From: Anthoceros angustus
Lineage: Eukaryota > Plantae > Anthocerotophyta
Reading direction: 5' to 3'
DNA length: 64,000 bases
NCBI GenBank assembly: GCA_010909165.1
Contig: MU008215.1
Span: forward strand, 248,001 to 312,000
Under the pieces are notes generated by a model. It was not told the origin of the DNA and searched no databases. It saw only the letters and a program-made list of their open reading frames with translations. Both the position numbers and the translations under genes were made by a program. Positions 10,615-58,240 of the stretch are shown piece after piece. Within the stretch, counting starts at the first letter, position 1. Each line of letters begins with the position of its first letter.

Positions 10615-13600
10615 CGAGGAGGTGAGCAGGAAAATATGGAACCTTCCAAAGGTTCCGGTGCCCTCATAGTGAGAGGGAGGTCCTGCGAAGGGAAACAGCC
10701 GGAAGCTTTTCGTAGCAAATCTAGTAGTCGTAACAAGAATGTGGAGTGTCACTATTGTCACAAAGGGTCACTTCAAAGAGAGTGCGAGAAGTTCAAAAGG
10801 ACCAAGGAAAAGAAGAAGCGGGGCGACAAGAAGGCGACTTCGCATCGAGTTGGAAGAGTTAAACTACATTGAGGACGGAGATGTCCTTATCTCTTCTTAC
10901 TTGAATCTTGCACAATTAACCCGTGGATAGTCATTTATTACGCAATTGGATAATTGACTCGGTGCATCTTTCCATGTTACTCCTCATAGAGTGGTTTAGC
11001 GTATGATGCTACAAGGAAAGGATCGTTAGGCTTGGAAATAACTATGCATGCGGATCGCAGCGAGGTGATGTGCAACTCAAGTTTGACAACGGATCTTCAT
11101 TCATCTTTGAAGGGCGTTAGGCATGTTCGAAGTTGACAAAGAGCATGACAGCTTGGATGATGCTGTTACCACCGTTTGGTTTGATCACTTGGAAGATCTC
11201 CAAAGGTTCTCTTGTGTTAGCTCGTGGATCGAGTGTGGCACTTTGTACTCACTTGTAAACATCACAAAGATCATGTGATCTGTGACAGAGCAACCAAATG
11301 TTTCCTTGTGGCATTGCGGTTAGGACATATGTCTCGAGAAGGGAATGAAGGTTTTATCTCGCTCGTTATATCCTGTTCTTAACTTCTCGATCTCTCGATG
11401 TGTGAGCCTTTGTTTATATGGGAAATGTATAAAATCATCACATCGAACACGAGGTAAAGTAGGAGTAAACCTCTTGAGTTGGTTCACGTGATGTATGTGG
11501 ACCTATGCTCTTGCATCATTAGGCGGTCTCCTATTTTGTCACTTTCATAGATGATTTCTCACGCAAGGTGTGGGTTTATCCTTTGAGGAAAAAGGATGAA
11601 GTTACGGCGGTGTTTGAAATTTGTCACCCTTGTAGAGAATCGCCGCCACCGATTGAAGTGTCTAAGGACGTATAATGGTGGAAGTATGTTCGAAAGCTTC
11701 ATCATTCGTGATTCCAAGGAATCAAAGAGAATTGATCACAGATACTCCTCCACAAAATGGTGTGGTGGCGGATGAGCAGAACCATTCGAGGAGAGGATGC
11801 GAGTTTGTTGTCAAACTACGGATTGCCTAATGGGTTTTGGGCGTATGGTTCATCAGCTCATCTTATTAATGATCTCCTAATAAGGTCATGATGAGCAGAA
11901 CCATTCGAGGAGCTATGGTCCGAAAGAAACCATCCTACAAGCATCTGCGAGTGTTTGTGAGGCATACCGCCATGTTCCAAAAGAGTTTGGGACAAGTTGG
12001 CACCTAAGTCCAAGAAATGTATTTTTCTTGGCTATGGTGATTCCGTGAGATGGGATACCGTTTGTGGGATCGAGGCTAGAAAGGTTGTTCGTACTAACGA
12101 CGTGTTCTTCAATGAGAACAAGATGCACGGAAGCCTACTCCAACCGTGGAGGTGCGAAGGGTGATCTTCAAGAAGATGGACATGATCATCATGGGCGGGT
12201 TGATAAGTGGTAATGTGTGTGAGCACATTCCTCCACCGATAGATGAACCAAGAGTCGAACAAGCACCTATAGAGGTGCTCGTGCTCAGAGGTCGTGCAGA
12301 TTACACGACCGATATGATCCATCTGGATTATGTTATGCCGACAGATTGGGGAACCCTCTTCTTACAAAGAGGCCATGTCAATGAGTAACAAAGTGGGAGA
12401 AGGCCATGCGATCGAAATGAATCATATAAGAACCAAACTTGGGAGTTGGTTCCGCTGTTTAAGGATAAGAAGGCACCACTGCAAATGGGTGTACAAGATG
12501 AAGGTCATACCTTGATGGCAAACCAAAGTACAAGGCACGATTGGTTGCTAAGGGTTTCAAGCAAAACAACTGCATTGACTTTGATGAGATTTTCTCACCG
12601 AGTCAAAATGACAACTTTGCGATGTGTTCTTGCTTGCTGCCGTGGAATGATATGGAACTTGTAGATGGATGTCAAGACGGCATTCTTGCATGGTGACCTT
12701 CAAGAGGAAGTCTACATGCAAAGAACCAAGGTTTTGTTGAGAAGGGCAAAGAGCATCCGTGCAGTGTTGAGGAAGAGCCTTTATGGTTTGAAAAAGCACT
12801 GAGAGTGGTATCACAAGTTCCACTCATTTATGCTTTCTCAAGGCTACAAGCGTGGCGATGAGGATCATTGCCTATAAAGCAAGCTAAGGATCAAAGCTTG
12901 CTCATTTTGATCCTCTATGTGGATGATATGCTAATTGTCGAACAAGATCGATGAGATTTTCTGAAGTCAAAGTTGAATGCTCACTTTGAAATGACAGACT
13001 TGGGAGGCGAGCCATATACTTGGCATGCGATTGAACATATAAGCGCCCGCTTTATTTGTCCATTTTAATACATTAACGAGGTGCTTCAACGTTTCAACAT
13101 GGAGAAGGGAAGCCATTGGGTACTCCATTGCCTCCATATGTGAAACTTTCAAGCGGATTGCCCAAGCTACGAGGAGGACAAAGTCGAAATGGAGAAGGTC
13201 CCATACTCATCACCGTAGGGAGTTTGATGTATGCAATGATTGCTACACGCCCCGACATTGCCTTTGCAGTGGTTAGCGTTTATGTCAAACCACAGCAAGA
13301 AGCATTGGGAGGCGATAAAAGGAGTTATGAGGTATCCGAATGGTACAAAAGCTTTGTGCATATGTTTTGGTAGTGAAGATGCATGTGTGGTTGGGTACCA
13401 CGGATCTCGATTATGCGAGGATATGGACAAAAGGAGGTCCACATCGAGTTATGTCTTCACGCACCGGAGGGGCTCATGGCGATCTCGCTTATCGGCATTA
13501 CGCTATCTACCAGGCCGAGTATGTTGCGACAGCGGGGCTTGCAAGGAAGCCATATGGCTTGCCTGCTTAGTGGGAGACTTGGGGATCAAGGTTGAGTCGC

Positions 13601-14115
13601 TGTTGCATTGTGATAGCAGTGCTATCCAATTGGCAAAGAATCCGATGTTTCATGCGAAGACTAAACATGTGGATGTGAAGTATCACTTCATTCGAGAGGT
13701 GACGACAAGAGGGTACAACTTGTCAAGGTTCACACCACCTGTAACCCCGCAGATATTCTTACCAAGGGACTCTACTTGAGCAATTTGCACAAGCTCGGAC
13801 AGCGATGGGCATGAGGTAGTCCATTCTTCACGAAAGTAAATTGGCCTTTAAGTGAGAGGTTGTAAGGGTATTAAAGCCCAATGTACTTAGACTAATACAC
13901 TTAGTCTAAGTTAGGTGTCGATTAAGTATCATTAGTTTAGAAGCTAATCACTAGGAAGCTTCTTGTGCTCCTTCCTAGGGGCTTCTTGTGGAGCTTCCTA
14001 GGGAGCCCTGGAGGTATAAATACCCTCCAAGCCTCATCTCAAGGTGAGAGAGTTACACTTGCCTCCTCCTCTCCTCTCCTCTTTCCACCATCATGGGCTA
14101 CTATACGATCCGTCA
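10615..14115 (+). mobile_element. Ty1/copia family A (Tnt1-like), 5'-truncated, with 3' LTR
   Basis: ECHYCHK zinc knuckle, WIIDSG protease, LGHMS pre-integrase, integrase, [10 protein letters not shown] and LYVDDM RT, and FHAKTKHVDVKYHF RNase H, all heavily frameshifted. PPT aagtgagaggt and LTR TGTAAGGG at 13861-14115. Confidence 0.9.
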
Positions 14116-16261: not shown

Positions 16262-19200
16262 ATGGCCACATTATGGCAATCGGACCCGTTGTCGACCCAG
16301 AACATTGCAATTGGTATGTGTATAGGGATCCGACCAGGAGCTCCCGCTCACCTCATCATAGGGAGCCAAGCCCTGGCAAACAAAGCCTCCAGGTTCAGCA
16401 GTGTAAGGAGCCCAGCAGTCCCGCTTCCGATATCGTGTGTGGGTAGGGACGGGTTTTCCAGCGATGCCGGTCGTTGCCAGGAGCAGGAGCAGGAGCACTT
16501 GTGGCAACAATTTTTTCTGGATCCTACCCTGTGGTGGGACAACAGACGAGATGGGAAGAGCTCCCGTTCCCCTGACTTCCGGCGTAAGGGGTCCGGCGAG
16601 GTACTGTGGTTAAAGAACATGTCTAAGCCAGCTTGGGTTGACGAGAAGCTCGTTTCCTTGGATATGCACATGGGTCACGGCGCCTCTCCGTCCAACTCGA
16701 GCTCTCGAGATAATCCTGAACTTGGGAGACGTGCAGAATCCGAAATGGGCTCCAGATGCAGCAGTGTAAGGAGCCCAGTGCTTCCACATCCGAGAAAACG
16801 TCTGGGTGGGGACGGGATTTCCAACGATGGTCGTCGCCAGGAGCAGGAGCACTTATGGCAACAATTTTTTCTGGACCCTACCCTGTGGTGGGATAACAGA
16901 CGAGATAAGAAGAGCTCCCGTTCCCCTGACTTCCGGCATAAGGAGTCCGGCGAGGTGCTGTGGTTGAACAACATGTTCAAGCCAGCTTGGGTTGATGAGC
17001 AGCTCGTTTCCTTGGATATGCAGATGGGTCATGGTGCCTCTCCTTCCAGTCAGCTCTCGGATAAGCCTGAACCTGGCAGGCGTGCAGGATCGGAAATGGC
17101 GTCGTTACGGCTGTAACCGTGAGCACGTTCTGTCAGCAGGGGAAGCTTTCTGAGGCCGTTGGAGCCCTGGAATCTCTGGCCAAGACAGACTCCGCTGTTT
17201 CTCAGTCTCTGTTTTACACCGTGCTGAAGCTGTGTACAGCCAAGAAGGATTTGGTTGTGGGGCGTCGCGTTCATGATCTCACTGCCAAACTTGGGTACGA
17301 GTCGAGTGCATTCTTGGGGAACCATATCTTGCGCATGTATGCATGTGGAGGTAGGCTGCAGGAGGCCATGGATGTGTTCACCAGGGTGGGCAAACCAGAT
17401 GTCTTCATGTGGTTTTCCATAATCTCTGCACATGCTAAGCATGGGAAACCTAAGGAGGCCATACAACTGTACCATGAGATGCGTAGGTCAGGAGTGAAGG
17501 GGAATGGTCACGTCTTTGTAGCTGCGCTTCAGGCTTGCGCACTTGCTGCCGACTTGGAATCTGGCAGAAAAGTGCACTCTGATGTGCTGCACAGTGGCAC
17601 TCCTACTGACATGTTTGTTGGGAACTGCCTCGTGGACATGTATGCAAAATGTGGCGAACTGAAAGATGCACACCAGGTTTTTGAAAGCATGGCCAAAAGG
17701 GATGTGGTGACATGGACGGCGCTGATTGCTGGGTATGCACAGCAGGGGCTCGGCAAGAGGCGCTTGTTGTGTATGGACAAATGGAGCAGGAGGGCCTCAT
17801 TTTGGCTAACCATGTTACTTTTGCTTGCCTTCTGAAGGCCTGTGCAAGCACTGGTGCCTTACAGAAGGGCAGGCAGCTGCACTCACAGATTGTGAAGAGG
17901 ACTGCTGGATGACGGTGGGCACCTGCCTGGTGGACATGTATGCAAAATGTGGTGAACTGGAAGATGCACGCCAGGTTTTGACAGCATGCCACAAAGGATG
18001 TGGTGACATGGACCGCCCTGATTGCTGGGTATGCACAGCAAGGACTCGGCCAAGAGGCGCTTGTTCTGTATGGACAAATGGAGCAGGAGGGCCTCATTTT
18101 GGCTAACCATGTTGCTTGCCTTCTGAAGGCCTGTGCAAGCACTGGTGCCTTACAGAAGGGCAGGCAGCTGCACTCACAGATTGTGGAAGAGGACTGCTGG
18201 ATAATGTAGTGTGGGCACCTGCCTGGTGGACATGTATGCAAAATGTGGTGAACTGGAAGATGCACGCCAGGTTTTGACAGCATGGCCAAAGGATGTGGTG
18301 ACATGGAATGCCCTGATATCTGGGTATGGTACTTGTGATGAAGGTCACAAGGCACTAGCTTGTTTTGAGGAGATGTTAGTTGCCGGTATTCAGCCTGATG
18401 ATACTTTACTTGCCTTCTAGTAGCATGCAGTCATGAGGACTGGTCCACGAGGGTCGCAAGCACTTTGATTCCATGGCTGAACAGCATGGCATCAAACCTA
18501 CTATTGAGCATTACACCATGATTGATCTTCTTGGGCGTGCAGGCCATTTAGATGAGGCAGAGAAGATGCTATTATCATGTGAGGGCCAAAGTAATGTTGT
18601 GGGCTTGAGGTCTTTGTTGAATGCCTGCAAACGTCACGGGGATATAGAGAGGGCGATGTGGTGTTTTGAAAGCATTGTTAGGCTGGACCTCAGGAGGCGC
18701 CTGCGTATGTGCTCATGGCCAATGCCTACGCAGATGCAGGTAGGTGGACCGATGTAGACAGGATTGAAACACAGAGAAGGGCAGCAGGAGCTAGCAAGAA
18801 ACCTGCTGTGGCGACAATTGAGGTGAAAAACGAGGTACACCGATTTCTGGTGGGAGAAAGGAGACAGGATATTGCGCTCAAGGCAGAGAGCACGAATGCA
18901 CGTCTGAAGCAGGAAGGAGGCCACGTAGCTCACACGAAGTTGGTCTTGAAGCCACTGTGTGAGAAGGACAAAGAAGAAGTGCTTTGTGGGCATGCCGAAA
19001 AGCTGGCCTTGGCGTTTGGACTCTTGAACACACCGAGTGGGACACCTCTGGTGGTAACGAAGAATCTGCGCATGTGCAGTGACTGCCACAGTTCCACGGA
19101 GATCATGTCAAGGCTTGAACAGAGAGACATTGTTGTAAGGGATGGGTACCGTGTGCATCGATTCGCAGTTGGTTGTTGCAGTTGTAAGGGTCGACTTTGA
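16262..19200 (+). CDS. PPR gene 1: transit-like leader, 2x OSB-type PDF motif, PLS PPR array (~14 motifs), E1, E2, DYW:KP (GRL end); putative U-to-C editing factor
   Basis: ORFs 16262-17116, 17119-17835 and the following pieces join into one intronless frame after single-base corrections. Motifs: [15 protein letters not shown] twice, [74 protein letters not shown]. Confidence 0.88.
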
Positions 19201-19299
19201 GAATAATGAAGAACTAGCAGTGCTGTAGTGCTGACGGTTGTTATCATGATCTATGTATTTGTCTCTTTTCCATCCCACGTTAAGTCATATTTTCAGTCC

Positions 19300-23969: not shown

Positions 23970-26488
23970 TGTTGCTAAAGCGGAAGCTTATTGTAAATTG
24001 ACAAGAATGAATTAATTACAAAATTGTATGTCTTTTATACTTGTGACTTGTGTCCGTTCGCTTAACCTAAATAGCATTAAGTAACTACACATTAATCTGT
24101 GTTAGGGTAAACAATATAACCCTTAACACTCCCACTTAGCCGTAGACACAGATTAAATAGGAGAACCCTAACATCATTGTCTAGGCTAGCACGGGTTACC
24201 CCTTAACCAAACGGAAAACAGCTTATTATTATTCCCACTGCTCGCGAGTTGCATGTGCTCTGACGATTGCCATTCTCAGCTTGTCCGAATTGAAGGCTGG
24301 GAGCGATGGAGCTATTCCTGATCGCCCTTATAAGCGTGTTCGCCATGCTGATTACTTGCAGAGTTGAGGCGGTGATCACCGAAATGGCTCGAAGCAGGAA
24401 CCGTGCCCTGTCCAGCCAGAGGCGTCCTCTCGCGCAACACCCTGAAGCAGAGCCTCCTAGCTCAGATTCGCTGGAATCCGACACCACTGAGGAATTCTCT
24501 CTTCCAATTGCACAACGACGACCGACTGTGGCCAGCAGGAGCATGTTCCGACATCTTCATGCTGTGCTCAAAAAGTGCGAGGAGCTGGACCTGGCCCTAA
24601 AGGAAACAAGTGGCAGGCTGAATGAGCTACGGGACTTGGTTTCTCGCAGACCTAATCCAGATGACCCTGAACACCCCTTATCAGAGTCAGAGTGCAAGCT
24701 CATGGTGGAGGAGCTAATCCAGCTGGGTTACGTTGCAGAGGTTGACGGTGGACAACCTTACAGCCCCGCTCATGTGTACTGGTAAGTGAGGGGGAACTTC
24801 TTTCGTGCATACAGTCTACGATTTGTGACTGACATGTGAGATTCATCCACTAAACTGTCTGCTGCCTACATGCAAGCAATTCACGACTAGTTCTCGACAG
24901 GGAAGCTTCATCCACTGAACTACTTGCTGTTGTTACCACCTGTGACAGGAAAGACGATGACGGCAAGATATTTAGAAGGACAGGGTGGAAGCCTGGACCA
25001 CCCATTGACACCAGGCCCGTAGAGCCCTTCTAGATAGTCATGTCATTCAGTCCTCCTGTAAGCAAGTGTTGGCCTCATTTTGTAGTGGGAGTGGGCATGA
25101 CAAACTCCTTCAGTCCGAGAGCTGCAACATGCTTGTAGTGCTTCACTTTGGGAAGCCCTTTTGTCAAGATATCAGCAGTATTGCTGTCTGTATGTGTATA
25201 CTCAACCTTGACCACTCCTCTTTCTGCAGTATCACGTATGTAGTGATGATATAATTCAATATGTTTGGTACGTGCATGAAATCTCGGGTTCGAGACCAAG
25301 GCAATGGCACTCATGTTGTCACAGAAGAGCTGGGTTGGATCTGTCTGAGATAAGTGCACATCTGCCAGGAATTGTCGTTCCCATTCGGCTTCTTTACAAG
25401 CATCTGTTAACGCTTTATACTCCGCTTCAGTGCTTGAAAGTGCTAACGAGGCTTGCTTCTTGCATGACCAGTTGACAGATCCAGATGCTAACTGAAACAC
25501 ATAAGCCGAAAGGCTGCGTCTTGTATCTGCATCCAAAGCCCAGTCTGCATCAGCCCAGGAGGTAAGTACCATCTGCTTTAGCCCACTGGCTGTGTAGTGT
25601 AAACCAAGATGAATGGTGCCTTTAAGATAACGATAAATCCGCTTCACAGCAACCCAATGTGCTCGACCAGGGCTCTTGAGGAATTGGCTAACGATACTGA
25701 CAGCATAAGAAATGTCTGGGTGAGTCCAGTTGGCAATAAGGCCGCAACCTCGGCCGGGGTACGAATATAATCTCTGGCTGCTTTGGAACATGTCTCATCA
25801 ACTTTTCTCCCACTGCTGAGGGAGTGGAGACAGGACGAGCAGAATCAAGGCCGAACCTTTTAAGAATCTCCTTAAGGTACTTGGTTTGATGTAACACAAT
25901 GGTACCAGCAGCCCTGTCATGGAGACTTTGAATGCCGAGACAAAACTGCAGCTCTCCTTGATCGGTCATTTCGAACTCTGCTCGAAGCATGTCCTTGGCT
26001 TTATTTAACATAGCTGTGCTGTTGCTTAACAGAATGGCGTCATCAACATAGAGGGCTAGGATCACGAAGAAGTCACCTTCAGCAAAGTAGAAGACATTGG
26101 AGTCTGCCCCAGACTGCACAAAGCCCATCTTTTTTTGGTACTTCATAATACGCCTATACCAAGCCCTTGGGCTTTGCTTTAAACCATACAGAGTTTTCAA
26201 AAGCTTACATACGCGTTTTGGCCACTTAGGATCGACAAAGCCCTCTGGCTGCTCCATGTATATAACTTCCTCAAGCTCGCCATGGAGAAACGCAGTGCAT
26301 ACATCCATTTGGTGAACCTCGAGGTCATACTCAGCAGCCATAGCAAGCAGGATGCGGATGGATGGAGGTTTCACAACAGGAGAGAAAGCCTCCCCATAAT
26401 CCACACCAGGTATTTGGCTAAAACCTCGTGCAACTAACCGAGATTTATAGCGAGCAATTGTACCATCAGACTTCGATTTTGTCTTTCA
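23970..26488 (-). mobile_element. Ty1/copia family B, 3' half (RT, RNase H, antisense ORF, PPT, 159-bp 3' LTR), nested in family A
   Basis: Two 238-aa ORFs: FSPVVK...MDVCTAFLHG...LYVDD and WADADWALDADTRRS...FHARTKHIEL. PPT at 24129-24139; LTR TGTTAAGG...TAGCAACA at 23970-24128. Confidence 0.9.
24306..24785 (+). CDS. Intact 159-aa antisense ORF in the 3' region of copia B
   Basis: ATG-to-stop ORF between the RNase H stop (25075) and the PPT. Hydrophobic N-terminus, MARSR motif and heptad-like region; homologous to 7467-8093. Confidence 0.65.
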   Translation: MELFLIALISVFAMLITCRVEAVITEMARSRNRALSSQRRPLAQHPEAEPPSSDSLESDTTEEFSLPIAQRRPTVASRSMFRHLHAVLKKCEELDLALKETSGRLNELRDLVSRRPNPDDPEHPLSESECKLMVEELIQLGYVAEVDGGQPYSPAHVYW

Positions 26489-30627: not shown

Positions 30628-31119
30628 GTGAGGATTGGAGGAGGAAGGAGGAAGCTTAGGAGCTGATCCTTTCCTCTTCTTAAGCCGCCTCTTCTTCCTC
30701 CTTCTCCCCAACTCGGTATTCCCATTCCTCGCTAATCGAATGGCTCTAGCCGGCCTTAGTCTCGCTGCAGTGTACTTCCATTTTTCGGACAATCCGCTCC
30801 ACAAACCAATCCCTTTTGCTCTTGTGAGTACCCAGGTGGGTGGACCGCGCCCGCGGCCGGCGCCAGACACAGCCCCGCGTTCAGCGGTGCCGCGTGCCGT
30901 CTTGCCCGCCGCGCCCGCGCCGCGCCAGCGGCCCGCGCCCGTGTCGCCGCGGCCTCCGCTTGACGGCCCGCACGCCTGCCCGCACGGCCTTCTGCGCGCC
31001 GCCACGGCCTGGCCCCGCGGCGGGCTGGCGTCGCCAGCTCGAGGCCTTGCCTCGCTCACTGCCCTCGTGGCTCGCGACTGCTGGGCGTTCGCAACTCTGC
31101 GATATGGATCACCGCAATT

Positions 31120-31273
31120 ATACCCTCCACGGGGCTCCCTAGGAAGCTCCACAAGAAGCCCTGGAAGGAGCACAAGAAGCCTAGTGATTAGCTTCAGCTA
31201 AACTAATGATACTTAATCGACACCTAACTTAGACTAAGTGTATTAGTCTAAGTACATTGGCTTTAATACCCTT
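31120..31273 (-). mobile_element. Partial family A LTR, inverted relative to 30372-30627
   Basis: cttagactaagtgtattagtctaagtacattggctttaataccctt is the reverse complement of the LTR-A start. Confidence 0.85.
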
Positions 31274-31274
31274 G

Positions 31275-40302: not shown

Positions 40303-40306
40303 ATCT

Positions 40307-40513
40307 TATGCTGAGAAACTAGCTCTGATGTTTGGTCTCTTAAACACTCTGAGTGAGACTCTAGTGGTAACGAAGAATCTACGAATGTGCCATGACTGCC
40401 ACAATTCCACGGAGATCATGTCAAGGCTTGAACGGAGACACATTGTTTTAAGGGATGGGTACCATGTGCATTGATTCCAAGATAGCTGTTGCAATTATAA
40501 GGGTCGACCTTGA
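40307..40513 (+). pseudogene. Decayed DYW:KP C-terminal fragment (GRP end)
   Basis: YAEKLALMFGLLNT...KNLRMCHDCH...DGYHVH*FQDSCCNYKGRP*. Has HAE to YAE (cat to tat) and a cga to tga stop. Confidence 0.85.
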
Positions 40514-41168: not shown

Positions 41169-41305
41169 ACACGACATACAGATAACGTAACCGGAAGCCA
41201 GAAAGAAGCGGGTTGCACGAAAGCCTGCACCTGTCTTGCCTCTTCCCAATACTGTAAGTTTTCCGTGGCATACCAACTTGGGCACTTACTACTTGTTCAC
41301 TGTTC

Positions 41306-43874
41306 TCACGGTCGACCCTGACAACTGCAACAACCATTTGCGAATCGATGCACCCGGTACCCATCCCTTACGACGATGTCTCTCTGTTCAAGCCTTGACA
41401 TGATCTCCGTGGACCTGTGGCAGTCACTGCACATGCGTAGGTTCTTCGTTACCACCAGAGGTGTCCACTCAGTGTTCAAGAGACCAAACGCCAGAGCTAG
41501 CTTCTCAGCATGCCCACAAAGCGCATCTTCCTTTTCCTTCTCACACACAGCTTCAACACCAACTTTGTGAGGTACGTGGCCTCCTTCCTGCTTCAGACGT
41601 GCATTGCTCTCTACCTTAAGCGCAATATCCTCTCCTTTCTCCCACCAGAAATCTATGTACCTGCTTATTCACCTCAATGGTCGCCACTGCAGGTTTCTTG
41701 TTAGCTCCTGCTACCATTCTCTGTGTTTCAATCCTGTCTACATCGTCCACCTACCTGCATCTGCATAGGCATTGGCCATGAGCACATACGCAGACGCCCC
41801 TGAGGGTCCAGCCTAACAATGCTTTCAAAACACCATCCTCTCTATATCCCGTGACTTTTGCAGGCATTCAACAAAGACGTCAATCCACAACATTACTTTG
41901 GCCCTCATGATGACCATGTTCTCAGCCTCATCTAAATGGCCTGCACGCCCAAGAAGATCAATCATGCAGGTGTAATGCTCAATAGTAGGTTTGATGCCAT
42001 GCTGTTCAGCCATGGAATCAAAGTGCTTCGACCCTCGTGGACCAAGTCCTCATGACTGCATGCTACTAGAAGGCAAGTAAAAGTAGCACCATCAGGCTGA
42101 ATACCGGCAACTAACATCTCCTCAAAACAAGCTAGTGCCTCTGACCATCATCACAAGTACCATACCCAGATATCAGGGCATTCCATGTCACCACATCCTT
42201 TGTGTTCATGCTGTCAAAAACCTGGCGTGCATCTTCCAGTTCACCACATTTTGCATACATGTCCACCAGGCAGTTGCCCAACACATTATCCAGCAGTCCT
42301 CTTTCCACAATCTGTGAGTGCAGCTGCCCTTCTGTAAGGCACCAGTGCTTCCACAGGCCTTCAGAAGGCAAGCAAAAAATAACATGGTCAGCCAAAATGA
42401 GGCCTTCCTCCATTTGTCCATACAGAACAAGCTCTTGGCCGAGTCCTCTGTGCATACCCAGCAATCAGGGCATTCCATGTCACCACATCCTTTGTGCCAA
42501 GCTGTCAAAAACCTGTGCATCTTCCAGTTCACCACATTTTGCATACATGTCCACCAGGCAGTTGCCCACCAAGTATGTCATCCAGCAGTCCTCTTTCGAC
42601 AATGTGAGTGCAGCTGCCTGCCCTTCTGTAAGGCACCAGTGCACAGGCCTTCAGAAGGCAAGCAAAAGTAACATGGTCAGCCAAAATGAGGCCCTCCTGC
42701 TCCATTTGTCCATACAGAACAAGCGCCTCATGTCCCAACTTGCTGCATACCCAGCAATCAGGGCATTCCATGTCACCACATTCTTTGTGTTCATGCAAAA
42801 ACCTGGCGTGCATCTTTCAGTTCACCACCATACCCAGATATCAGGCATTCCATGTCACACATCCTTTGTGGTGCTGTCAAAACCTGGCGTGCATCTTTCA
42901 GTTCACCACATTTTGCATACATGTCCACCAGGCAGTTGCCAACAAAAGTCAGTAGGAATGCCACTGCACACATCACAGTGCACTTTTCTGCCAGATTCCA
43001 AGTCGGCAATGCACAAGCTTGAAGGGCAGCTACAAAGACGTGAGCATCCGCCTTCACTCCTGACCTACGCATCTCATGGTACAGTTGTATGGCCTCATTA
43101 GGTTTCCCATGCTTAGCATGCAGGAGATTATGGAAGACCACATGAAGACATCTGGTTTGCCACCCTGGTGAACACATCCATGGCCTCCTGCAGCCTACCT
43201 CCACATGCATACATGCGCAAGATATGGTTCCCCAAGTATGCATTCGACTCGTACCCAAGTTTGACAGTGAGATCATGAACTCGTCGCCCCACAACCAAAT
43301 CCTTCTTAGCTGTACACAGTTTAGCACAGTGTAAAACAGAGACTGGAGTCTGTCTGCGCCAGAGATTCCAGGGCTCCAACGGCCTCAGAAAGCTTCCCTG
43401 CTGACATAACGTGCTCACGGTTCCAGCCGTTACGACGCCCATTTCCGATCCTGCCAGGTTCAGGCTTATCCGAGCTCGACTTGGAAGGAGGCACCATGAC
43501 CCATCTGCATATCCAAGGAAACGAGCTGCTCATCAACCCAAGCTGGCTTAAACATGCTGTTTAACCACAGGACCTCGCCGGACCCTTACGCCGGAAGTCA
43601 GGCGAACGGGAGTCTTCTTATCTCGTCTGTTGTCCCACCACATGGTAGGGTCCAGAAAAATTGTTGCCACAAGTGCTCCTGCTCCTGGCGACGACCATCG
43701 CTGGAATCGTCCCCACCCACAATTTTCGGAAGTGCTGGGCTCCTTACACTGCTGCACCTGGAGGCTTGGTTTGCCAGGGGTTGACTCCTGAGGTGAGCGG
43801 GAGCTCCTCGTAGAATCCCTGTACACACACACCAATTTGTTGGGTCCACAACGGTCCGGGCCATACTGTGGCAT
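41306..43874 (-). CDS. PPR gene 2: PDF motif, PLS array, E1/E2, DYW:KP (GRP end); many frameshifts (artefact or pseudogene unresolved)
   Basis: [15 protein letters not shown] near 43630, PPR motifs, and CGHAEKLA...CSDCH...CSCQGRP* ending at 41306. Confidence 0.78.
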
Positions 43875-44215
43875 CGTTCAGGGACGTCAGCTGAAGACTG
43901 TCAGATGAGGACTGTGCATACCACACACCTGAAGGATGGTGCATGGTCCAGGAGCAGGACGAAGACCAGTCCTTTGACTTCAGGAGTTTGCATTCACACT
44001 GAAGGAGACATGGTTTCAACATGCGGCTATTGTAAAAAGTGTTTTTAGAGACATTCATTTTCATATCCTGGACAAGAAAGTTTCATTCATCTCTCTGTTC
44101 TGATGAGGTGATCAAGAGCCATCCATGCATGTCTCAGTTACATGAGTTCAAGCATTCACCCCAAGGAAAGGAATATTCTCTGGCGTCACTTACACTGGCT
44201 AGTTCCTTCATTTTT

Positions 44216-47045
44216 TCACGGTCGACCTTACAACTGCAACAACCATTTGCGAATCGATGCACACGGTACCCATCCCTTACAACAATGTCTCTCTGTTCAA
44301 GCCTTGACATGATCTCCGTGGAACTGTGGCAGTCACTGCACATGCGTAGATTCTTCGTTACCACCAGAGGTGTCCCACTCGGAGTGTTCAAGAGACCAAA
44401 CGCCAGAGCTAGCTTCTCAGCATGCCCACAAAGCACATCTTCCTTTTCCTTCTCACAGCTTCAACACCAACTTTGTGTGAGGTACGTGGCCTCCTTCCTG
44501 CTTCAGACGTGCATTCGTGCTCTCTACCTTAAGCGCAATATCCTCTCCTTTCTCCCACCAGAAATCTATGTACCTGCTTATTCACCTCAATGGTCTGCAG
44601 GTTTCTTGTTAGCTCCTGCTACCTTCTGTGTTTCAATCCTGTCTACATCGGTCCACCTACCTGCATCTGCGTAGGCATTGGCCATGAGCACATATGCAGG
44701 CGCCTCCTGAGGTCCAGCCTAACAATGCTTTCAAAACACCACATCCTCTCTATATCCCCGTGACTTTTGCAGGCATTCAACAAAGACGTCAAGCCCACAA
44801 CATTACTTTGGCCCTCACATGACATATCTTCTCAGCCTCATCTAAATGGCCTGCACGCCCAAGAAGATCAATCATGCAGGTGTAATGCTCAATAGTAGGT
44901 TTGATGCCATGCTGTTCAGCCATGGAATCAAAGTGCTTGCGACCCTCATGGACCAGTCCTCATGACTGCATGCTACTAGAAAAAGTAGCATCAGGCTGAA
45001 TACCGGCAACTAACATCTCCTCAAAACAAGCTAGTGCCTTGTGACCTTCATCACAAGTACCATACCCAGATATCAGGGCATTCCATGTCACCACATTCTT
45101 TGTGTTCATGCTGTCAAAAACCTGGCGTGCATCTTCCAGTTCACCACATTTTGCATACATGTCCACCAGGCAGTTGCCCAACACTACGTTATCCAGCAGT
45201 CCTCTTCCACAATCTGTGAGTGCAGCTGCCTGCCCTTCTGTAAGGCACCAGTGCTTCACAGGCCTTCAGAAGGCAAGCAAAAGTAACATGTCAGCCAAAA
45301 TGAGGCCTCTTGCTCCATTTGTCCATAACAAGCGCCTCTTGGCGAGTCCTTGCTGTGCATACCCAGCAATCAGGGCATTCCATGTCACCACATTTGTGGC
45401 CAAGCTGTCAAAAACCTGGCGTGCATCTTCCAGTTCACCACATTTTGCATACATGTCCACCAGGCAGTGCCCACCGTCATCCAGCAGTCCTCTTTCAACA
45501 ATCTGTGAGTGCAGCTGCCTGCCCTTCTGTAAGGCACCAGTGCTTGCACAGGCCTTCAGAAGGCAAGCAAAAGTAAGTAGCCAAAATGCCCTCCTCCATG
45601 CTCCATTTGTCCATACAGACAAGCCTCTTGGCGAGCCCTTGCTGTGCATACCCAGCAATCAGGGCATTCCATGTCACCACATCCTTTGTGGCCAAGCTGT
45701 CAAAAACCTGGCGTGCATCTTCCAGTTCACCACATTTTGCATACATGTCCACCAGGCAGTTGCCCACCATATCAGCAGTCCTCTTTCAACAATCAGTGAG
45801 TGCAGCTGCCTGCCCTTCTGTAAGGCACCAGTGCTTGCACAGGCCTTTAGAAGGCAAGCAAAAGTAACATGGTCTGCCAAAATCAGGCCCTCTTGCTCCA
45901 TTTGTCCACACAGAATATGTGACTCTTGGCTGAGTCCTAGCTGTGCGTACCCAGATATCAGGGCATTCCATGTCACCACATCCTTTGTGCCCATGCTGTC
46001 AAAAACCTGTTGCGCATCTTTTAATGAACCACATTTTGCATACATGTCGACCAGGCAAGTGCCAACAAACCGGTTAAGAGGAATGCCACTGTGCAACACA
46101 TCACAGTGCACTTCTCTGCCAGTTTCCAAGTCGGCGGCAAATGCGCAAGCTTGAAGGGCCGCAACAAAGACGTGACCATTGGCCTTCACCCCTGACCTGT
46201 GCATATCATGGTACAGTTGTATGGCCTCAATAGGTTTCCCATGCTTAGCGTATGCGGAGATTATAGAAGACCACATGAAGGCATCAGGTTTGCCCACCCT
46301 GGTGAACACATCCATGGCCTCCTGTAGCCTACCTCCACATGCATACATGCGCAAGATATGGTTCCCCAAGTATGCATTCGAATCGTACCCAAGTTTGACA
46401 GTGAGATCATGAACTCGTCGCCCCACCAAATCCTTCTTAGCTGCTCAGCACAGTGTAAAACAGAGACTGAGAAATGCAGAGTCTGTCTGCGCCAGAGATT
46501 CCAGGGCTCCAACGGCCTCAAGCTTCCCTGCTGACATAACATGCTCACGGTTCCAGCCGTTACGACGCCCATTTCCGATCCTGCACGCCTCCAGGTTCAG
46601 GCTTATCCAGAGTGCTCGACTTGGAAGGAGAGGCACCATGACCCATCTGCATATCCAAGGAAACGGGCTGCTCATCAACCCATGCTGGCTTTAACAGATT
46701 GTTTAACCACAGGACCTCGCCGGACCCCTTACGCCGGAAGTCAGGCGAACGGGAGCTCTTCTTATCTTGTCTGTTGTCCCACCACATGGTAGGGTCCAGA
46801 AAAAATTGTTGCCACAGGTGCTCCTGCTCCTGCTCCTCGTGACGACCATCGCTGGATAACTCGTTCCAACACACACGATTTATCAGAATCGGAAGTGCTG
46901 AGCTCCTTACGCTGCTGCACCTGGATTGACTGATTGCCAGGGGTTGGTTTCCTACGGTGAGGTGGGCGGGAGCCCCCAGTACAATCCCTATGCACGCACC
47001 GATTTGTTGGATCCACAACGGGTCCGGTTGCCATACTGTGGCCAT
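44216..47045 (-). CDS. PPR gene 3: PDF motif, PLS array with 4 YAKCG S-motifs, E1/E2, DYW:KP; frameshifted
   Basis: ORF 46560-47045 has [19 protein letters not shown]; 251-aa clean PPR ORF at 45674-46429. HAEKLA and CSDCH present; GRP is restored by one G. Confidence 0.8.
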
Positions 47046-52533: not shown

Positions 52534-55333
52534 ATGGCCACAGTATGCCAACCTGACCCGCTTGGGACGCAACAAATTGGTTTGTGTTCAGGGATTCGAC
52601 GAGGAGATCCCTCGCATCTCGCTTTACGGAGTCAACCCTGGACAAACAATCAAACCTCCAGGTGCAGCAGCAGTGTAAGGAGCCCAACACTTCCACTTCC
52701 GAGAAAATGTGTGGGTGGGGACAGATTTTCCAGCGATGGTCGTCGCGAGGAGGACTTGTGGGAACATTTTTTTCTGGATCCTACCATGTGGTGGGACAAC
52801 AGACGAGATAAGAAGAGCTCCCGTTCGCCTGACTTCCGGCGTAAGGGGTCCGACGAGGTCCTGCGGTTAAACAGCATGTTGAAGCCACCTTGGGTTGATC
52901 AGCAGCTGGTTTCCTTGGATATGCAGATGGGTCATGATGTTTCTCCTTCCAAGTCGAGCTCTCCGGTTAGACCTGGCAGGCGTGAAGGATCAGGTACGGG
53001 CGTTGTAACGGCTAGAACCGTGAGTATGTTATGTCAGCAGGGGGAGCTTTCTGAGACCATTGAAGCCCTGGAATTTCTGGCGCAGACAGACCATGCTATT
53101 TCTCAGTCTCTGTTTTATACCGTGCTAAAACTGTGTGCATCTAAGAAGGATCTGGTTGTGGGCCGACGAGTCCATGATCTCAGTGTCAAACTTGGGTGAG
53201 TCGATGCATACTTGGGGAACCATATCTTGCGCATGTATGCATGTGGAGGTAGGCTGAGGAGGCCATGGATGTGTTCACCAGGGGCAAACCAGATGCCTTC
53301 ATGTGGTTTTCCATAATCTCTGCACATGCTAAGCATGGGAAACCTAATGAGGCCATACAACTGTACCATGAGATGCGTAGGTCAGGAGTGAAGGCGGATG
53401 CTCACGTCTTTGTAGCTGCCTTCAAGCTTGTGCATTTGCCGCCGACTTGGAATCTGGCAGAAAGTGCACTGTGATGTGTTGCACAGTGGCATTCCTTAAC
53501 TTGTTTGTTGGCAACTGCCTGGTGGACATGTATGCAAAATGTGAACTGAAAGATGCACGCCAGGTTTTTGACAGCATGGCCACAAAGGATGTGGTGACAT
53601 GGAATGCCCTGATTGCTGGGTAAGCAAGGGTTTGGACAGAGGCGCTTGTTCTATGGACAAATGGAGCAGGAGGGCCTGATTTTGGCTGACCATGTTACTT
53701 TTGCTTGCCTTCTGAAGGCCTGTGCAAGCACTGGTGCCTTACAGAAGGGCAGGCAGCACTCACAGATTGTTGAAAGAGGACTGCTGGATGACATACTGGT
53801 GGGCAACTGCCTGGTGGACATGTATGCAAAATGTGGTGAACTGAAGATGCACGCCAGGTTTTTGACAGCATGGCCACAAAGGATGTGGTGACATGGAATG
53901 CCCTGATTGCTGGGTATGCACAGCAAGGGCTCGGACATGAGGCTTGTGTATGGACAAATGGAGCAGGAGGCCTGATTTTGGCTGACCATGTGACTTTGCT
54001 TGCCTTCTGAAGGCCTGTGCAAGCACTGGTGCCTTACAGAAGGGCAGGCAGCTGCACTCACAGATTGAAAGAGGACTGCTGGATGATATACTGGTGGGCA
54101 ACTGCCTGGTGGACATGTATGCAAAATGTGGTGAACTGGAAGATGCACGCCAGGTTTTTGCAGCACAAAGGATGTGGTGACATGGAATGCCTGATTGTAT
54201 GCACAGCAAGGACTTGGCCAAGAGGCGCTTGTTGTGTATGGACAAATGGAGCAGGAGGGCCTGATTTTGGCTAACCATGTTACTTTTGCTTGCCTTCTGA
54301 AGGCCTGTAAGCACTGGTGCCTTATAGAAGAGGCAGGCAGCTGCACTCACAGATTGTCGAAAGAGGACTGCTGGATGACGTAGTTGGCACCTGCCTGGTG
54401 GACATGTATGCAAAATGTGGTGAACGAAGATGCACGCCAGGTTTTTGACAGCATGACACAAGGATGTGGTGACATGGAATGCCCTGATATCTGGGTATGG
54501 TACTTGTGATGAAGGTCACAGGCACTAGCTTGTTTTGAGGAGATGTTAGTTGCCGGTATTCAGCCTGATGCTACTTTTACTTGCCTAGTAGCATGCAGTC
54601 ATGAGGGACTGGTCCACGAGGGTCGAAAGCACTTTGATTCCATGGCTGAACAGCATGGCATCAAACCTACTATTGAGCATTACATTGCATGATTGATCTT
54701 CTTGGGCGTGCAGGCCATTTAGATGAGGCAGAGAAGATGCTTATCATGTGAGGCCAAAGTAATGTTGTGGGCTTGACGTCTTTGTTGAATGCCTGCAAAA
54801 GTCACGGGATATAGAGGGGCGTGGTGTTTTGAAAGCATTGTTAGGCTGGACCCTCAGGCATCTGCATGTGCTCATGGCCAATGCCTATGCAGATGCAGGT
54901 AGGTGGACGATGTAGACAGGATTGAAACACAGAGAAGGTAGCAGGAGCTAACAAGAAACCTGCAGTGGCGACCATTGAGGTGAATAAGCAGGTACATACA
55001 TTTCTGGTGGGAGAAAGGAGAGATGATATTGAGAGAGAGCATGAACGTCTGAAGGAAGGAGGCCACGTACCTCACACAAAGTTGGTGTTGAAGCCACTGT
55101 GTGAGAAGGAAAAGGAAGATGCTTTGTGGGCATGCTGAGAAGCTAGCTCTGGCGTTTGGTCTCTTTGAACACTCTGAGTGGGACACCTCTGGTGGTAACG
55201 AAGAATCTACGCATGTGCAGTGACTGCCACAGTTCCACGGAGATCATGTCAAGGCTTGAACAGAGAGACATTGTTGTAAGGGATGGGTACGCATCGATTC
55301 GCATGGTTGTTGCAGTTGTAAGGTCGACCGTGA
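52534..55333 (+). CDS. PPR gene 4: PDF motif, PLS array with 4 YAKCG S-motifs, E1/E2, DYW:KP; frameshifted
   Basis: ORF 52534-53199 has [19 protein letters not shown] in frame with the first PPR motif. kpavatiev-encoding DNA at about 54955; HAEKLA, CSDCH and aaggtcgaccgtga end. Confidence 0.8.
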
Positions 55334-55676
55334 GAATAATATGAAGCCAGTTCAAGTGCGTTCAAGCTTTTGTCCATCCCTATCCTGAGACATGGATGTA
55401 CACTGATCCACTCTCTCATAACAGTCACCAGAATCGAATGAATCTCTTTCAATGAAGATTTGGACAATGAACAGTCTCTGTCATGAAACTGATCAACCAT
55501 CACAGAGTCACGTGGAATGAAACTCTCACCCTTGTAGACTGGAATCCTCAATCGCATGGGTACACCTGCTTTCACCATGCCTTTCGTGTACTCAACTGCA
55601 TCCTTCAGGGTGGTGGTCACAGTGCACCTGGGCATCCTACTTTGTTAGGTCTCATCCCGACAGCGGTCCCTGAACG

Positions 55677-58240
55677 ATGGCCAGTGGCAACCGGACCGTT
55701 GTGGACCCAACAAATTGTGTGTGTACAGGGATTCTACGGAGCTCGCTCACCTCACCTCAGGAGTCAACCCCTGGCTCCGTGCAGCAGTGTAAGGAGCCCA
55801 GCACTTCCACCTGAGAAATGTGGTGGGGACGGATTTCCAGCGATGGTCGTCGCAGGAGCAGGAGCACTTGTGGCAACAATTTTTCTGGACCCTACCATGT
55901 GGTGGGACAACAGACGAGATAAGAAGAGCTCCCGTTCGCCTGACTTCCGGCGTAAGGGGTCCGGCGAGGTCCTGTGGTTAAACAGCATGTTTAAGCCAGC
56001 TTGGGTTGATGAGCAGCTCGTTTCCTTGGATATGCAGATGGGTCATGGTGCCTCCTTCCAAGTCGAGCTCCGGATAAGCCTGAACCTCAGGCGTGCAGGA
56101 TCGGAAATGGGCGTCGTAACGGCTGGAACCGTGAGCATGTTATGTCAGCAGGGAAGCTTTCTGAGGCCGTTGGAGCCCTGGAATCTCTGGCGCAGAGACT
56201 CTGCCATTTCAGTCTCTGTTTACACTGTGCTGAAACTGTGTACAGCTAAGAAGGATTTGTGGGGACGAGTTCATGATCTCACTGTCAAACTTGGGTACGA
56301 GTCGAATGCATACTTGGGGAACCATATCTTGCGCATGTATGCATGTGGAGGTAGGCTAGAGGAGGCCATGGATGTGTTCACCAGGGTGGGCAAACCAGAT
56401 GTTCATGTGGTCTCCATAATCTCTGCATGCTAAGCATGGGAAACCTAATGAGGCCATACAACTGTACCATGAGATGCGTAGGTCAGGAGTGAAGGCGATG
56501 CTCACGTCTTTGTAGCTGCCCTTCAAGCTTGTGTTTGCCGCCGACTTGGAATCTGGCAGAAAGTGCACTGTGATGTGTGCAGTGGCATTCCTACTAACTT
56601 GTTTGTTGGCAACTGCCTGGTGGACATGTATGCAAAATGTGAACTGAAAGATGCACGCCAGGTTTTGACAGCATGGCCACAAGGATGTGGTGACATGGAA
56701 TGCCCTGATATCTGGGTATGCAAAATGGTGAACTGAAAGATGCACGCCAGGTTTTGACAGCATGACAAAGAATGTGGTGACATGGAATGCCCTGATTGGG
56801 TATGCAGCAAGGCACATGAGGCTTGTTCTGACAAATGGAGCAGGAGGGCCTCATTTTGGCTAACCATGTTACTTTTGCTTGCCTTCTGAAGGCCTGTGCA
56901 AGCAGCCTGAAAAGGCACTGAGATTGTTGAAAGAGGACTGCTGGATAATGTAGTGTGGCACCTGCCTGGTGGACATGTATGCAAAATGTGGTGAACTGGA
57001 AGATGCACGCCAGGTTTTGACAGCGGCCACAAAGGATGTGGTGACATGGAATGCCCTGATTGCTGGGTATGCACAAGGACTTGGGCCAAGAGGCGCTTGT
57101 TCTGTATGGACAAATGGAGCAGAGGCCTGATTTTGGCAATGCTTGCCTTCTGAAGGCCTGTGGAAGTACTGGTGCCTTACAGAAAGGCAGGCAGCTCCAC
57201 TCACAGATTGTGGATAGAGGACTGCTGGATGACGTACTGTTGGGCACCTGCTTGGTGGACATGTACGCAAAATGTGGCAAACTGGAAGATGCACGCCAGG
57301 TTTTTGACAGCATGAACACCAAGAACGTGGTGACGTGGAATGCCCTGATCTCTGGGTACGGTTCTTGTGATCATGGGAAGACAGCACTATCTTGTTTTGA
57401 GGAGATGTTAGTTGGTGGAATTCAGCCTGATGGTGCTACTTTTACTTCCCTTCTAGTAGCATGCAGTCATGAGGGACTGGTCAACGAGGGTCGCAAGCAC
57501 TTTCATTCCATGGCAGAAGAGCATGGCATCAAACCTACGATTGAGCATTACACCTGCATGATTGACCTTCTTGGGCGGGCCGGCCAGTTAGATGAGGCAG
57601 AGAAGATGCTTTTGTCATGTGAGGGCCAAAGTAATGTTGTGGGCTTGAGGTCTTTGTTGAATGCCTGCAAAAATCACGGGGATACCGAGAGGGCAAGGTG
57701 GTGTTTTGAAAGTATTGTAAGGCTGGACCTCACGGTGCGTCTGCCTATGTGCTCATGGCCAATGCGTACGCAGATGCAGGTAGGTGGAGCGATGTAGACA
57801 GGATTGAAACACAGAGAAAGGTAGCAGGAGCTAACAAGAAACCTGGAGTGGCTACCATTGAGGTGAATAAGCAGGTACATAGATTTCTGGTTGGAGAAAC
57901 GAGAGAGGATATTGCACTTAAGGTGGAGAGCACGAATGCACGTCTGAAGCAGGAAGGAGGCCACATACCTCACACAAAGTTGGTGTTGAAGCCACTGTGT
58001 GAGAAGGAAAAGGAAGATGCGCTTTGTGGGCATGCTGAGAAGCTAGCTCTGGCGTTTGGTCTCTTGAACACTCCGAGTGGGACACCTCTGGTAGTAACGA
58101 AGAATCTACGCATGTGCAGTGACTGCCACAGTTCCACGGAGATCATGTCAAGGCTTGAACAGAGGGATATTGTTGTGAGGGATGGGTACCGTGTGCATCG
58201 ATTCGCAGATGGTTGTTGCAGTTGTAAGAATCGACCGTGA
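55677..58240 (+). CDS. PPR gene 5: PDF motif, PLS array, E1/E2, DYW:KP (KPGVA, NRP end)
   Basis: [19 protein letters not shown] in ORF 55483-56433. Clean 245-aa and 163-aa ORFs give P2-L2-S2-E1-E2 and KPGVATIEV...CGHAEKLA...CSDCH...CSCKNRP*. Confidence 0.85.

Follow-up and report, generated by a model that had tools for sequence, protein, structure and literature searches.

PPR arrays joined to an independently folded domain related to nucleic acids are known from the PPR-SMR proteins (pTAC2, GUN1, SOT1) and from PRORP, which combines PPR with NYN, and several proteins of these types are associated with nucleoids or the TAC. The SMR and NYN domains lie C-terminally in proteins of the P class, whereas the PDF domain described here lies N-terminally in the PLS editing class, and neither SMR nor NYN is homologous to PDF. 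Catalogues of PPR editing factors proceed motif by motif and treat the region in front of the first PPR as a transit peptide. The PDF motif itself is known from the OSB proteins, where it is located C-terminally behind an SSB-like OB fold. By itself, the PDF of AtOSB1 binds single-stranded DNA (ssDNA) (PMC6963530), OSB1 and OSB2 bind ssDNA in preference to dsDNA or RNA (PMC4166229), and the OSBs act in the surveillance of mtDNA recombination (PMC6963530, PMC4166229, PMC13393729). Recent OSB surveys treat PDF as specific to this family (PMC13393729). The closest described editing enzymes are the PPR-DYW:KP proteins of the hornwort GRP subgroup, which are defined by a KP box, a missing xHP, a methionine before CxxCH and a GRP ending (PMC11845758, PMC9478123). 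They are the basis of the designer U-to-C editors KP2 and KP3; U-to-C activity has been demonstrated only for the designer proteins KP2, KP3 and KP6, with 22–26% editing by GRP-type designs (PMC9478123). Published descriptions and designs of GRP proteins are confined to the PLS array and the domains C-terminal of it.

The 64-kb stretch of DNA analysed here (the window) contains five tandem PLS-E-DYW paralogs with 88–91% DNA identity, each harboring a PDF motif, besides fragments (Table 1). The cluster is a hornwort-type family of PLS-class PPR editing factors, five paralogs plus fragments, with the domain order organellar presequence, one or two OSB-type PDF motifs, linker, PLS PPR array, E motif and DYW:KP. 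The linker between PDF and PPR comprises 20–40 residues and is rich in Ser, Pro and Gly. When compared to the published GRP proteins, the window genes add the N-terminal PDF. When compared to the OSBs, they share the organellar presequence and the variable number of PDF copies, but the PDF is N-terminal, has no OB fold and is followed by PPR and deaminase; while the OSBs act on mtDNA, the window proteins have the build of RNA editors. Remains of retrotransposons as well as orphan fragments are interspersed among the PPR copies.

Table 1. Coordinates of the PDF-PPR genes, their domains and related features in the window.
Feature	Position	Strand	Remarks
Gene 1	16262..19200	+	Presequence, PDF x2, linker, PLS PPR, E, DYW:KP ending KGRL; from ORFs, tblastn, Pfam
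Gene 1, PDF copy 1	16481..16690	+	70 codons, in frame; all eight family-invariant residues kept
Gene 1, PDF copy 2	16835..17044	+	Sequence used for the AF2 model
Tandem duplication doubling the PDF unit, ~350-360 bp	16387..17099	+	blastn self-hits
1-bp gap (GGG -> GG) dividing the gene 1 PDF frame from the PPR frame	17097..17099	+	
Gene 1, PLS-type PPR array	17119..18700	+	Frames 1, 3, 1, 2; Pfam PPR 2e-24; tblastn
Gene 1, E2 motif and DYW:KP deaminase domain	18709..19200	+	KKPAVATIEV, ends KGRL; DYW_deaminase 3.8e-32
Orphan C-terminal DYW:KP fragment	40304..40513	+	Ends KGRP, internal stop; self-hits, tblastn, motif scan
Gene 2	41305..43875	-	PDF ~43487-43681, frame-broken; DYW:KP ends QGRP
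Gene 3	44215..47045	-	PDF 46626-46835 inside ORF 46560-47045
Gene 4	52534..55334	+	PDF 52738-52947; ORF 52534-53199 = presequence, PDF, linker and first PPR
Gene 5	55673..58240	+	PDF 55849-56058; ORF 55483-56433 covers PDF and PPR; KKPGVATIEV; ends KNRP

An earlier note on this DNA, made from the letters only, had placed the motif at six approximate positions. A six-frame scan located the Pro-Asp-Phe codons inside all six of these ranges, at 16571 and 16925 in gene 1 (plus strand), 43602 in gene 2 and 46745 in gene 3 (both minus strand), 52828 in gene 4 and 55939 in gene 5 (both plus strand). The copy of gene 2 is frame-broken and contains one stop. The alignment of the five in-frame copies is gap-free, with 71–89% identity to the first copy and a mean column identity of 88%.

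The motif of about 50 residues carries the Pro-Asp-Phe signature as well as the flanking W..WWDNR, LW and P.W positions. In an HMM database search, a profile built from the window copies retrieved 646 proteins at E ≤ 1e-3, 181 of them at E ≤ 1e-10, and by this measure the match to database proteins is far above chance. Of the best 150 among the 646, 73 possess an OB fold like that of the OSBs; another 13 are PPR proteins whose PDF is N-terminal. The named OSB matches, such as Populus OSB1-like (3.1e-26), Euphorbia OSB3 (1.5e-21) and Amborella OSB3 (7.5e-41), are all hit at their C-terminal PDF region. An alignment of 55 PDF sequences revealed that W8, D20, R22, D32, F33, L42, P50 and W52 are invariant. 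All eight residues are present in the in-frame copies of the window, which are 40–53% identical to the ~55-residue PDF of the OSBs and keep the same W/D/R/D-F/L/P/W positions. An AF2 model of the second PDF copy of gene 1 (pLDDT 90.4) matched in Swiss-Prot only the PDF segments of Arabidopsis OSB1–4, with TM scores of 0.85–0.67 and rmsd values of 0.9–1.5 Å in a comparison of predicted structures on both sides (OSB1 183–246 with TM 0.85, OSB2 307–357, OSB3 375–425 and OSB4 293–341). The predicted fold common to both is helix-strands-helix; beyond OSB1–4 no Swiss-Prot entry was convincing, the next one having an E-value of 5 and a probability of 0.03. The motif, as the earlier note had proposed, is hence in sequence and predicted fold a genuine homologue of the OSB PDF domain.

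Searches with the fold in the PDB (Foldseek, VIA-align wide) and in BFVD gave nothing significant, the sequence profile had no match in the PDB, and Pfam holds no PDF model. With the 221-aa ORF of gene 4 as query, a 5-mer word-index search had no match, a method ill-suited to a 55-residue domain in proteins of ~900 aa; the same search with the PDF regions of P0082, an ORF on a public contig from another sample, and of the Selaginella protein returned only self-matches, few 5-mers being shared. In the ESM Atlas, fold matches comprised SSB/OSB clusters and three PPR or DYW clusters with 57–127 members. A hint at Rad52-like or phage relatives in the same resource (TM 0.40–0.68) found no confirmation in BFVD and was discarded.

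The remaining domains identify the type of protein to which this PDF is attached. Window ORFs matched the Pfam models PPR (2.3e-24), PPR_2 (5e-24), E_motif (5.8e-08) and DYW_deaminase (3.8e-32), and self-hits displayed the PLS triplet repeat of ~295 bp; with a PLS array followed by an E motif, the predicted proteins fit a PLS-class PPR editing factor. Aligned to the PG-type structures 9kfx and 7o4e, the window sequence reads KKPAVATIEV versus KKEPGCSWIEV, has a gap of four residues at xHP and keeps HAEKLA and NLRMCSDCH. The KP box of gene 5 reads KKPG, and a motif scan found the endings KGRL in gene 1, QGRP in gene 2, KNRP in gene 5 and KGRP in the orphan fragment. Like the hornwort GRP subgroup (PMC9478123, PMC11845758), the window proteins thus combine PLS array, E motif and KP box with an absent xHP, HAE...CSDCH, a methionine before CxxCH and GRP-like C-termini. 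Judged by these sequence features, which include every one that defines the group, the C-terminal domains belong to the DYW:KP type of the hornwort GRP subgroup, and the assignment in the earlier note holds. Since U-to-C editing by designer KP editors of the GRP type proceeds without a PDF module (PMC9478123), the PDF is dispensable for catalysis and accessory at most.

The PDF and the PPR array are encoded as one unit. Genes 4 and 5 keep both in a single frame (Table 1), which for gene 4 bears out the uninterrupted ORF reported earlier. P0082 is an intact, intronless ORF of 753 aa with the order PDF-PLS-E-DYW:KP, ending in GGRP, an ORF of a Pteridium transcript contains PDF and then PPR, and annotated PDF-PPR proteins exist in Adiantum, Ceratopteris, Selaginella and Diphasiastrum. 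Family contigs from other public runs match gene 1 from ~16322 to the stop codon and no further, so that presequence and PDF are part of the conserved unit, and the PDF and the first PPR are separated by a conserved distance. An SSB/OB fold, present in the 73 OSB-type matches, was found neither in the window ORFs nor in any of the 13 PDF-PPR proteins, which are therefore not OSBs. The earlier note had taken the conservation across five paralogs as an argument against a chance fusion. This argument is weak because the paralogs are recent tandem duplicates, and it is the conservation across lineages that carries weight.

The named PDF-PPR proteins all stem from ferns and lycophytes, with none from seed plants among the named profile matches, and they end in the E motif, without a deaminase. 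The fusion is thus not specific to DYW:KP or U-to-C enzymes, with which the earlier note had linked it. Only C-to-U editing is known in Selaginella moellendorffii, which has a PDF-PPR protein. In a tree of 70 columns the monophyly of all PPR-linked PDFs was borderline (p-AU 0.05); the tree thus neither demonstrates nor clearly rejects a single ancient fusion. We found no paper in the searchable literature that links PDF with PPR, and the searchable papers on hornwort GRP/DYW:KP proteins do not mention an N-terminal PDF module. The earlier view of the architecture as uncharacterised thus stands, a passing mention elsewhere being possible.

As assembled, none of the five window copies has an uninterrupted frame from start to stop. 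All change frame several times, gene 1 at least five times according to ORFs and tblastn. Gene 1 has GGAAATGGCGTC in place of the ...GGGCGT of the paralogs, a deletion private to gene 1 against its four paralogs; the single missing G of the earlier note is therefore real, but it is not the sole break in this gene. It is conceivable, and we consider it just short of probable, that the five copies are pseudogenes from a family that was amplified recently, in which case the PDF would have no present function in the window even if the architecture works elsewhere. Apart from the repeated frame changes, each copy contains 13–31 private indels (1–33 bp, mostly not in homopolymers), the copies are mixed with retrotransposon remains and orphan fragments, and GRP genes are reported to be under-represented in transcriptomes (PMC9478123). 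However, the private indels are excessive for the private substitutions (31 versus 21 in gene 2, 27 versus 67 in gene 4), and a column-defined codon analysis gave dN/dS values of 0.32–0.69 over the genes and only 0–3 in-frame stops per ~700 codons. Furthermore, near-identical family contigs from other runs contain an extra base at four 1-bp gaps of gene 1 (18186, 18210/11, 18271 and 18436). The excess of small deletions over substitutions, together with dN/dS values of 0.3–0.7 and few nonsense codons, suggests that many of the frame breaks may be assembly errors. When public runs were aligned to gene 1, only contigs of 65–96 nt from a very large family matched and both flanks had zero depth; the aligned reads hence came from family members and not from the gene 1 locus.

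What the PDF contributes to such a protein we infer from the OSBs alone. The PDF in PDF-PPR editors probably serves as an additional anchor to single-stranded nucleic acid. Once inside the organelle, it would act as a sequence-independent, flexibly tethered anchor at the 5' end of the PPR footprint and would raise the factor's local substrate affinity along one of two routes. Either it would grip unstructured transcript directly upstream of the PPR binding site, or it would hold the factor on nucleoid ssDNA, such that editing occurs near transcription. The PPR array would keep the site specificity and the DYW:KP domain would do the chemistry. The second route follows the preference of the OSBs, while a role in gripping RNA would require a shift in this preference.

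Somewhat unlikely, by our estimate, is the stricter reading that the PDF parks the factor on ssDNA at transcription bubbles, R-loops or replication intermediates, makes no contact with the RNA substrate and renders editing co-transcriptional. The sufficiency of the PDF for ssDNA binding (PMC6963530) and the ligand preference of OSB1 and OSB2 (PMC4166229) speak for it, as do the retention of every invariant residue in the PPR-linked copies and the shared predicted fold; yet the other domains of the protein work on RNA. As this reading differs from a general single-strand anchor in the ligand only, the present computational analysis does not separate the two. Such a tether was the first option of the earlier note, which also put forward a single-strand unwinding module and DNA editing as candidate mechanisms.

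We regard it as improbable that the PDF is instead a protein-protein or oligomerisation module, which would dock onto OSBs or nucleoid proteins or give MORF/RIP-like help and would not bind nucleic acids. Seedless plants are not known to have the MORF/RIP helpers, and the confinement of the named PDF-PPR proteins to ferns and lycophytes would suit such a role. AtOSB2 is moreover a tetramer, but ssDNA binding is the sole experimentally assigned role of the PDF (PMC6963530), and its conserved aromatic and basic residues suit stacking on nucleic acids. That the PDF, as a remnant of an OSB, forms its own gene or exon upstream and is joined to the PPR array in appearance only, would agree with the frame break of gene 1 lying exactly between the two, but is ruled out for practical purposes by the uninterrupted PDF-PPR ORFs of genes 4 and 5, P0082, Pteridium and the annotated proteins of four species, by the absent OB fold and by the conserved spacing.

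On the reading of the PDF as a single-strand anchor, a conserved, independently folding single-strand-binding domain before the first PPR would add a new part to the editing machinery, in a layout that spans ferns, lycophytes and hornwort-type genes. It offers a handle on how sites are found in hyper-editing lineages, with their very large PPR families, and on whether editing is coupled to the nucleoid, makes the PDF a candidate addition to designer U-to-C editors, which are still inefficient, and broadens the known range of the PDF. A more far-reaching proposal, which we hold to be unlikely, is that a large and old PLS-PPR class of seedless land plants is anchored to nucleoid ssDNA via the PDF, with editing physically coupled to transcription. 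This coupling would cover C-to-U and U-to-C editing in hyper-editing hornwort-type, lycophyte and fern lineages, with the PDF as a built-in helper, and the lack of a named seed-plant PDF-PPR protein would fit a loss of this helper there, where trans-acting helpers are used instead. Far less likely still is the extreme version in which a DYW domain brought onto ssDNA edits DNA.

The number of PDF units varies in the window and beyond. Both copies of gene 1 lie within one ORF of 284 aa (16262–17116) and arose by the tandem duplication listed in Table 1, the halves of which (16387–16748 and 16750–17099) are 85% identical in a blastn self-comparison. The dN/dS value is 0.23 between these two copies; for the PDF segment between the copies of gene 1 and gene 3 it is 0.19–0.3, which together with the values over the genes points to constraint. 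Elsewhere, some PDF-PPR proteins carry two or three PDF motifs.

[quoted passage not shown] All six PDF copies were recovered where it had placed them in a six-frame scan with the motif ...KP.WVD, distributed over five PPR paralogs that share 88–91% DNA identity in blastn with gene 1 as the query. The five in-frame copies can be aligned gap-free, with 71–89% identity. We built a profile from the window's five PDF copies and searched 1.84 billion representative proteins without a word index, which yielded 646 matches at E ≤ 1e-3, 181 at E ≤ 1e-10 and 17 at E ≤ 1e-30. Among the best 150 matches, 73 have an OSB-like OB fold in common and carry the PDF near the C-terminus, 13 are PPR proteins with the PDF near the N-terminus and the remainder are fragments or PDF-only proteins. 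Named matches include the Populus 'protein OSB1, mitochondrial-like' (3.1e-26), the Euphorbia 'organellar single-stranded DNA binding protein 3' (1.5e-21) and Amborella OSB3. Two matches display further architectures, Coptis chinensis KAF9616283.1 (1526 aa) and Kingdonia uniflora KAF6142360.1 (1160 aa): one of the pair, an annotated angiosperm protein, has PDF motifs ahead of a kinesin motor domain and the other 13 PDF motifs plus an OB fold, layouts which may be real or may stem from merged gene models.

Features of the window, with indels and substitutions private to each PPR copy
Feature	Position	Strand	Private indels	Private substitutions	Remark
Gene 1	16262-19200	+	13	100	blastn extent
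Gene 1 PDF copy 1	16481-16690	+			six-frame scan
Gene 1 PDF copy 2	16835-17044	+			six-frame scan
Gene 2	about 41305-43875	-	31	21	blastn extent
Gene 2 PDF	about 43487-43681	-			six-frame scan; frame-broken
Gene 3	about 44215-47045	-	18	52	blastn extent
Gene 3 PDF	46626-46835	-			six-frame scan
Gene 4	52534-55334	+	27	67	blastn extent
Gene 4 PDF	52738-52947	+			six-frame scan
Gene 5	about 55673-58240	+	21	82	blastn extent
Gene 5 PDF	55849-56058	+			six-frame scan
Orphan C-terminal DYW:KP fragment	40304-40513	+			...NLRMCHDCH...KGRP, internal stop
Short PPR-like fragment	52068-52352	-			antisense, just upstream of gene 4
PLS-repeat match, 80 bp	211-290	+			at window start

When 55 PDF segments are aligned, identity between the window copies and the rest is 33–53%, and the eight invariant columns (W8, D20, R22, D32, F33, L42, P50 and W52) are all kept by the in-frame copies. 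The AlphaFold model of gene 1 PDF copy 2 (pLDDT 90.4, pTM 0.76) shows a helix followed by three short strands and a second helix. Only Arabidopsis OSB1, OSB2, OSB3 and OSB4 were matched among the Swiss-Prot models, in each case at the PDF segment (TM 0.85–0.67, rmsd 0.9–1.5 Å), the next match having E = 5, and more OSB-named proteins appeared among the AFDB clusters. Structure and sequence-profile searches of the PDB retrieved no solved structure with the PDF fold or sequence. Profile search, alignment and predicted fold thus provide three independent tests that bear out the assignment, and the motif is a genuine OSB PDF domain. In the ESM Atlas, the model also resembled two phage (Uroviricota) hypothetical-protein clusters (TM 0.64–0.68 over ~60 residues) and a Rad52-family cluster (TM 0.40); such relatives were not confirmed in BFVD or PDB searches, and these predicted-fold matches might hint at where the PDF fold came from.

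Pfam matches in the gene 1 ORFs comprise PPR repeats, the E motif and the DYW deaminase domain (3.8e-32); the N-terminal part has no Pfam match, a PDF model being absent from that database. Alignment to PG-type structures and a motif scan uphold the proposed KP class of the C-terminal domain. It reads KKPAVATIEV where PG proteins have KKEPGCSWIEV, lacks four residues around xHP, carries HAEKLA and NLRMCSDCH, and ends within the family in QGRP, KGRP, KGRL or KNRP. DYW:KP domains are described as having a KP pair instead of PG, Met instead of the Val of PG proteins, and a C-terminus that varies; these marks point to the hornwort GRP subgroup (PMC11845758; PMC9478123). The window proteins are PLS-PPR editing factors to which a known domain, the PDF, has been added.

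That PDF and PPR array belong to the same gene is borne out by shared ORFs, both here and in relatives. The gene 4 ORF 52534-53199 opens with a start codon, takes in presequence, PDF and linker, and reaches into the first PPR motif; both PDF and PPR lie within the gene 5 ORF 55483-56433. The nearest outside relative (P0082, 753 aa) is encoded on a public 9-kb contig by a single uninterrupted 2262-bp ORF in the order presequence, PDF, PLS array, E motif and DYW:KP, with the C-terminus GGRP. An N-terminal PDF with a PLS-type PPR array is also annotated in Adiantum capillus-veneris, Ceratopteris richardii, Selaginella moellendorffii and Diphasiastrum complanatum, and a Pteridium aquilinum ORF with PDF followed by PPR comes from a transcriptome, so that the two share one mRNA there. 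Across PDF-PPR proteins the spacing from PDF to first PPR is conserved, the presequence is not. In the ESM Atlas, the PDF model matches one SSB/OSB cluster and also three clusters of 57–127 members named as PPR or 'DYW domain-containing'. Moreover, thousands of short public contigs (65–96 nt, ≥95% like the gene 1 coding sequence), from runs, both DNA-like and RNA, that represent at least two coded organisms, cover 16322-19207, which is gene 1 from presequence through stop codon; the gene 1 flanks have no matching contigs in the same runs. This restricted coverage places the PDF part within the unit conserved across a large family, and indicates that near-identical PDF-PPR-DYW:KP genes form a very large and transcribed family in related samples.

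The named PDF-PPR proteins of ferns and lycophytes have an E motif at the C-terminus and no deaminase domain, which makes the PDF a trait shared by a wider range of PLS PPR proteins. Hence, while the earlier note was right on the homology to the OSB PDF, the fusion to PPR and the KP type, its pairing of the PDF specifically with DYW:KP is wrong. One of the lycophyte proteins is from Selaginella moellendorffii, in which only C-to-U editing is known. In a tree of PDF segments (70 columns), the window copies cluster with P0082 (support 96/84) and are joined with moderate support by fern PPR-linked PDFs, the lycophyte ones being placed elsewhere. Enforcing a single clade on all PPR-linked PDFs costs 27.8 log-likelihood units with a p-AU of 0.05; these 70 columns neither demonstrate one ancient fusion nor clearly speak against it.

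When a PPR array binds RNA, its N-terminal repeats lie on the 5′ side of the target. In the window genes, a low-complexity linker of 20–40 residues tethers the PDF to the N-terminal end of an array that ends in a U-to-C-type deaminase. The PDF is probably a single-strand anchor without sequence preference, placed at the PPR footprint's 5′ edge and either gripping unfolded transcript upstream of the editing site or holding the factor on nucleoid ssDNA; either ligand would raise the effective affinity and leave site specificity to the PPR part and chemistry to the DYW part. The AtOSB1 PDF motif alone is sufficient for ssDNA binding (PMC6963530), and OSB1 and OSB2 bind ssDNA in preference to dsDNA and RNA (PMC4166229). 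Since designer GRP-type editors function without a PDF (PMC9478123), the module is accessory and not catalytic. In the searchable literature, the papers that use the term PDF motif, among them those on OSBs, do not mention PPR, no description ties the motif to PPR or DYW, and the word pentatricopeptide is absent from a 2026 survey of 182 OSB genes. The fusion bears on organelle RNA biology and on the design of editors.

As assembled, each of the five copies has several frame changes. The 'single missing G' noticed earlier in gene 1 is indeed a 1-bp gap after 17097-17099, absent from the other four paralogs. Private indels (13–31 per copy) are mostly deletions of 1–18 bp and mostly outside homopolymers, a pattern that resembles decay. 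The GRP subgroup is also said to be under-represented in transcriptomes (PMC9478123), which keeps a partly dead cluster plausible. Other features speak against decay: private indels are too numerous for the private substitutions, the roughly 700 aligned codons include only 0–3 in-frame stops, and dN/dS between pairs of copies is 0.32–0.69; for the PDF segment it is 0.19–0.30 (gene 1 versus gene 3 copies). At the 1-bp gaps at 18186, 18210/11, 18271 and 18436 of gene 1, near-identical family contigs from other DNA and RNA runs contain the extra base. Because of the excess of private indels, the few stops, the dN/dS values and this extra base, many of the frame breaks can be read as probable errors of assembly, the family being multi-copy and beyond short-read polishing. 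Across the five genes, the number of small, deletion-biased indels exceeds or rivals that of private substitutions (31 versus 21 in gene 2), which points to an assembly-quality problem in the multi-copy families of this genome and affects every 'pseudogene' call based on the assembly.

Pieces of the PPR family are scattered beyond the five genes. The orphan DYW:KP fragment adjoins gene 2 without a PPR array upstream and is a sixth, truncated family member. Between the PPR genes are broken Ty1-copia-type pol ORFs whose translations resemble integrase and reverse transcriptase (13240-13779, 25075-26404, 28632-29660 and 35620-38060), which locates the cluster in repeat-rich DNA. Two stretches with a GC content of 0.56–0.58 (26650-27392 and 30625-32371) contain long Ala/Arg/Gly/Pro-rich ORFs on both strands and resemble repeat DNA of low complexity more than genes.
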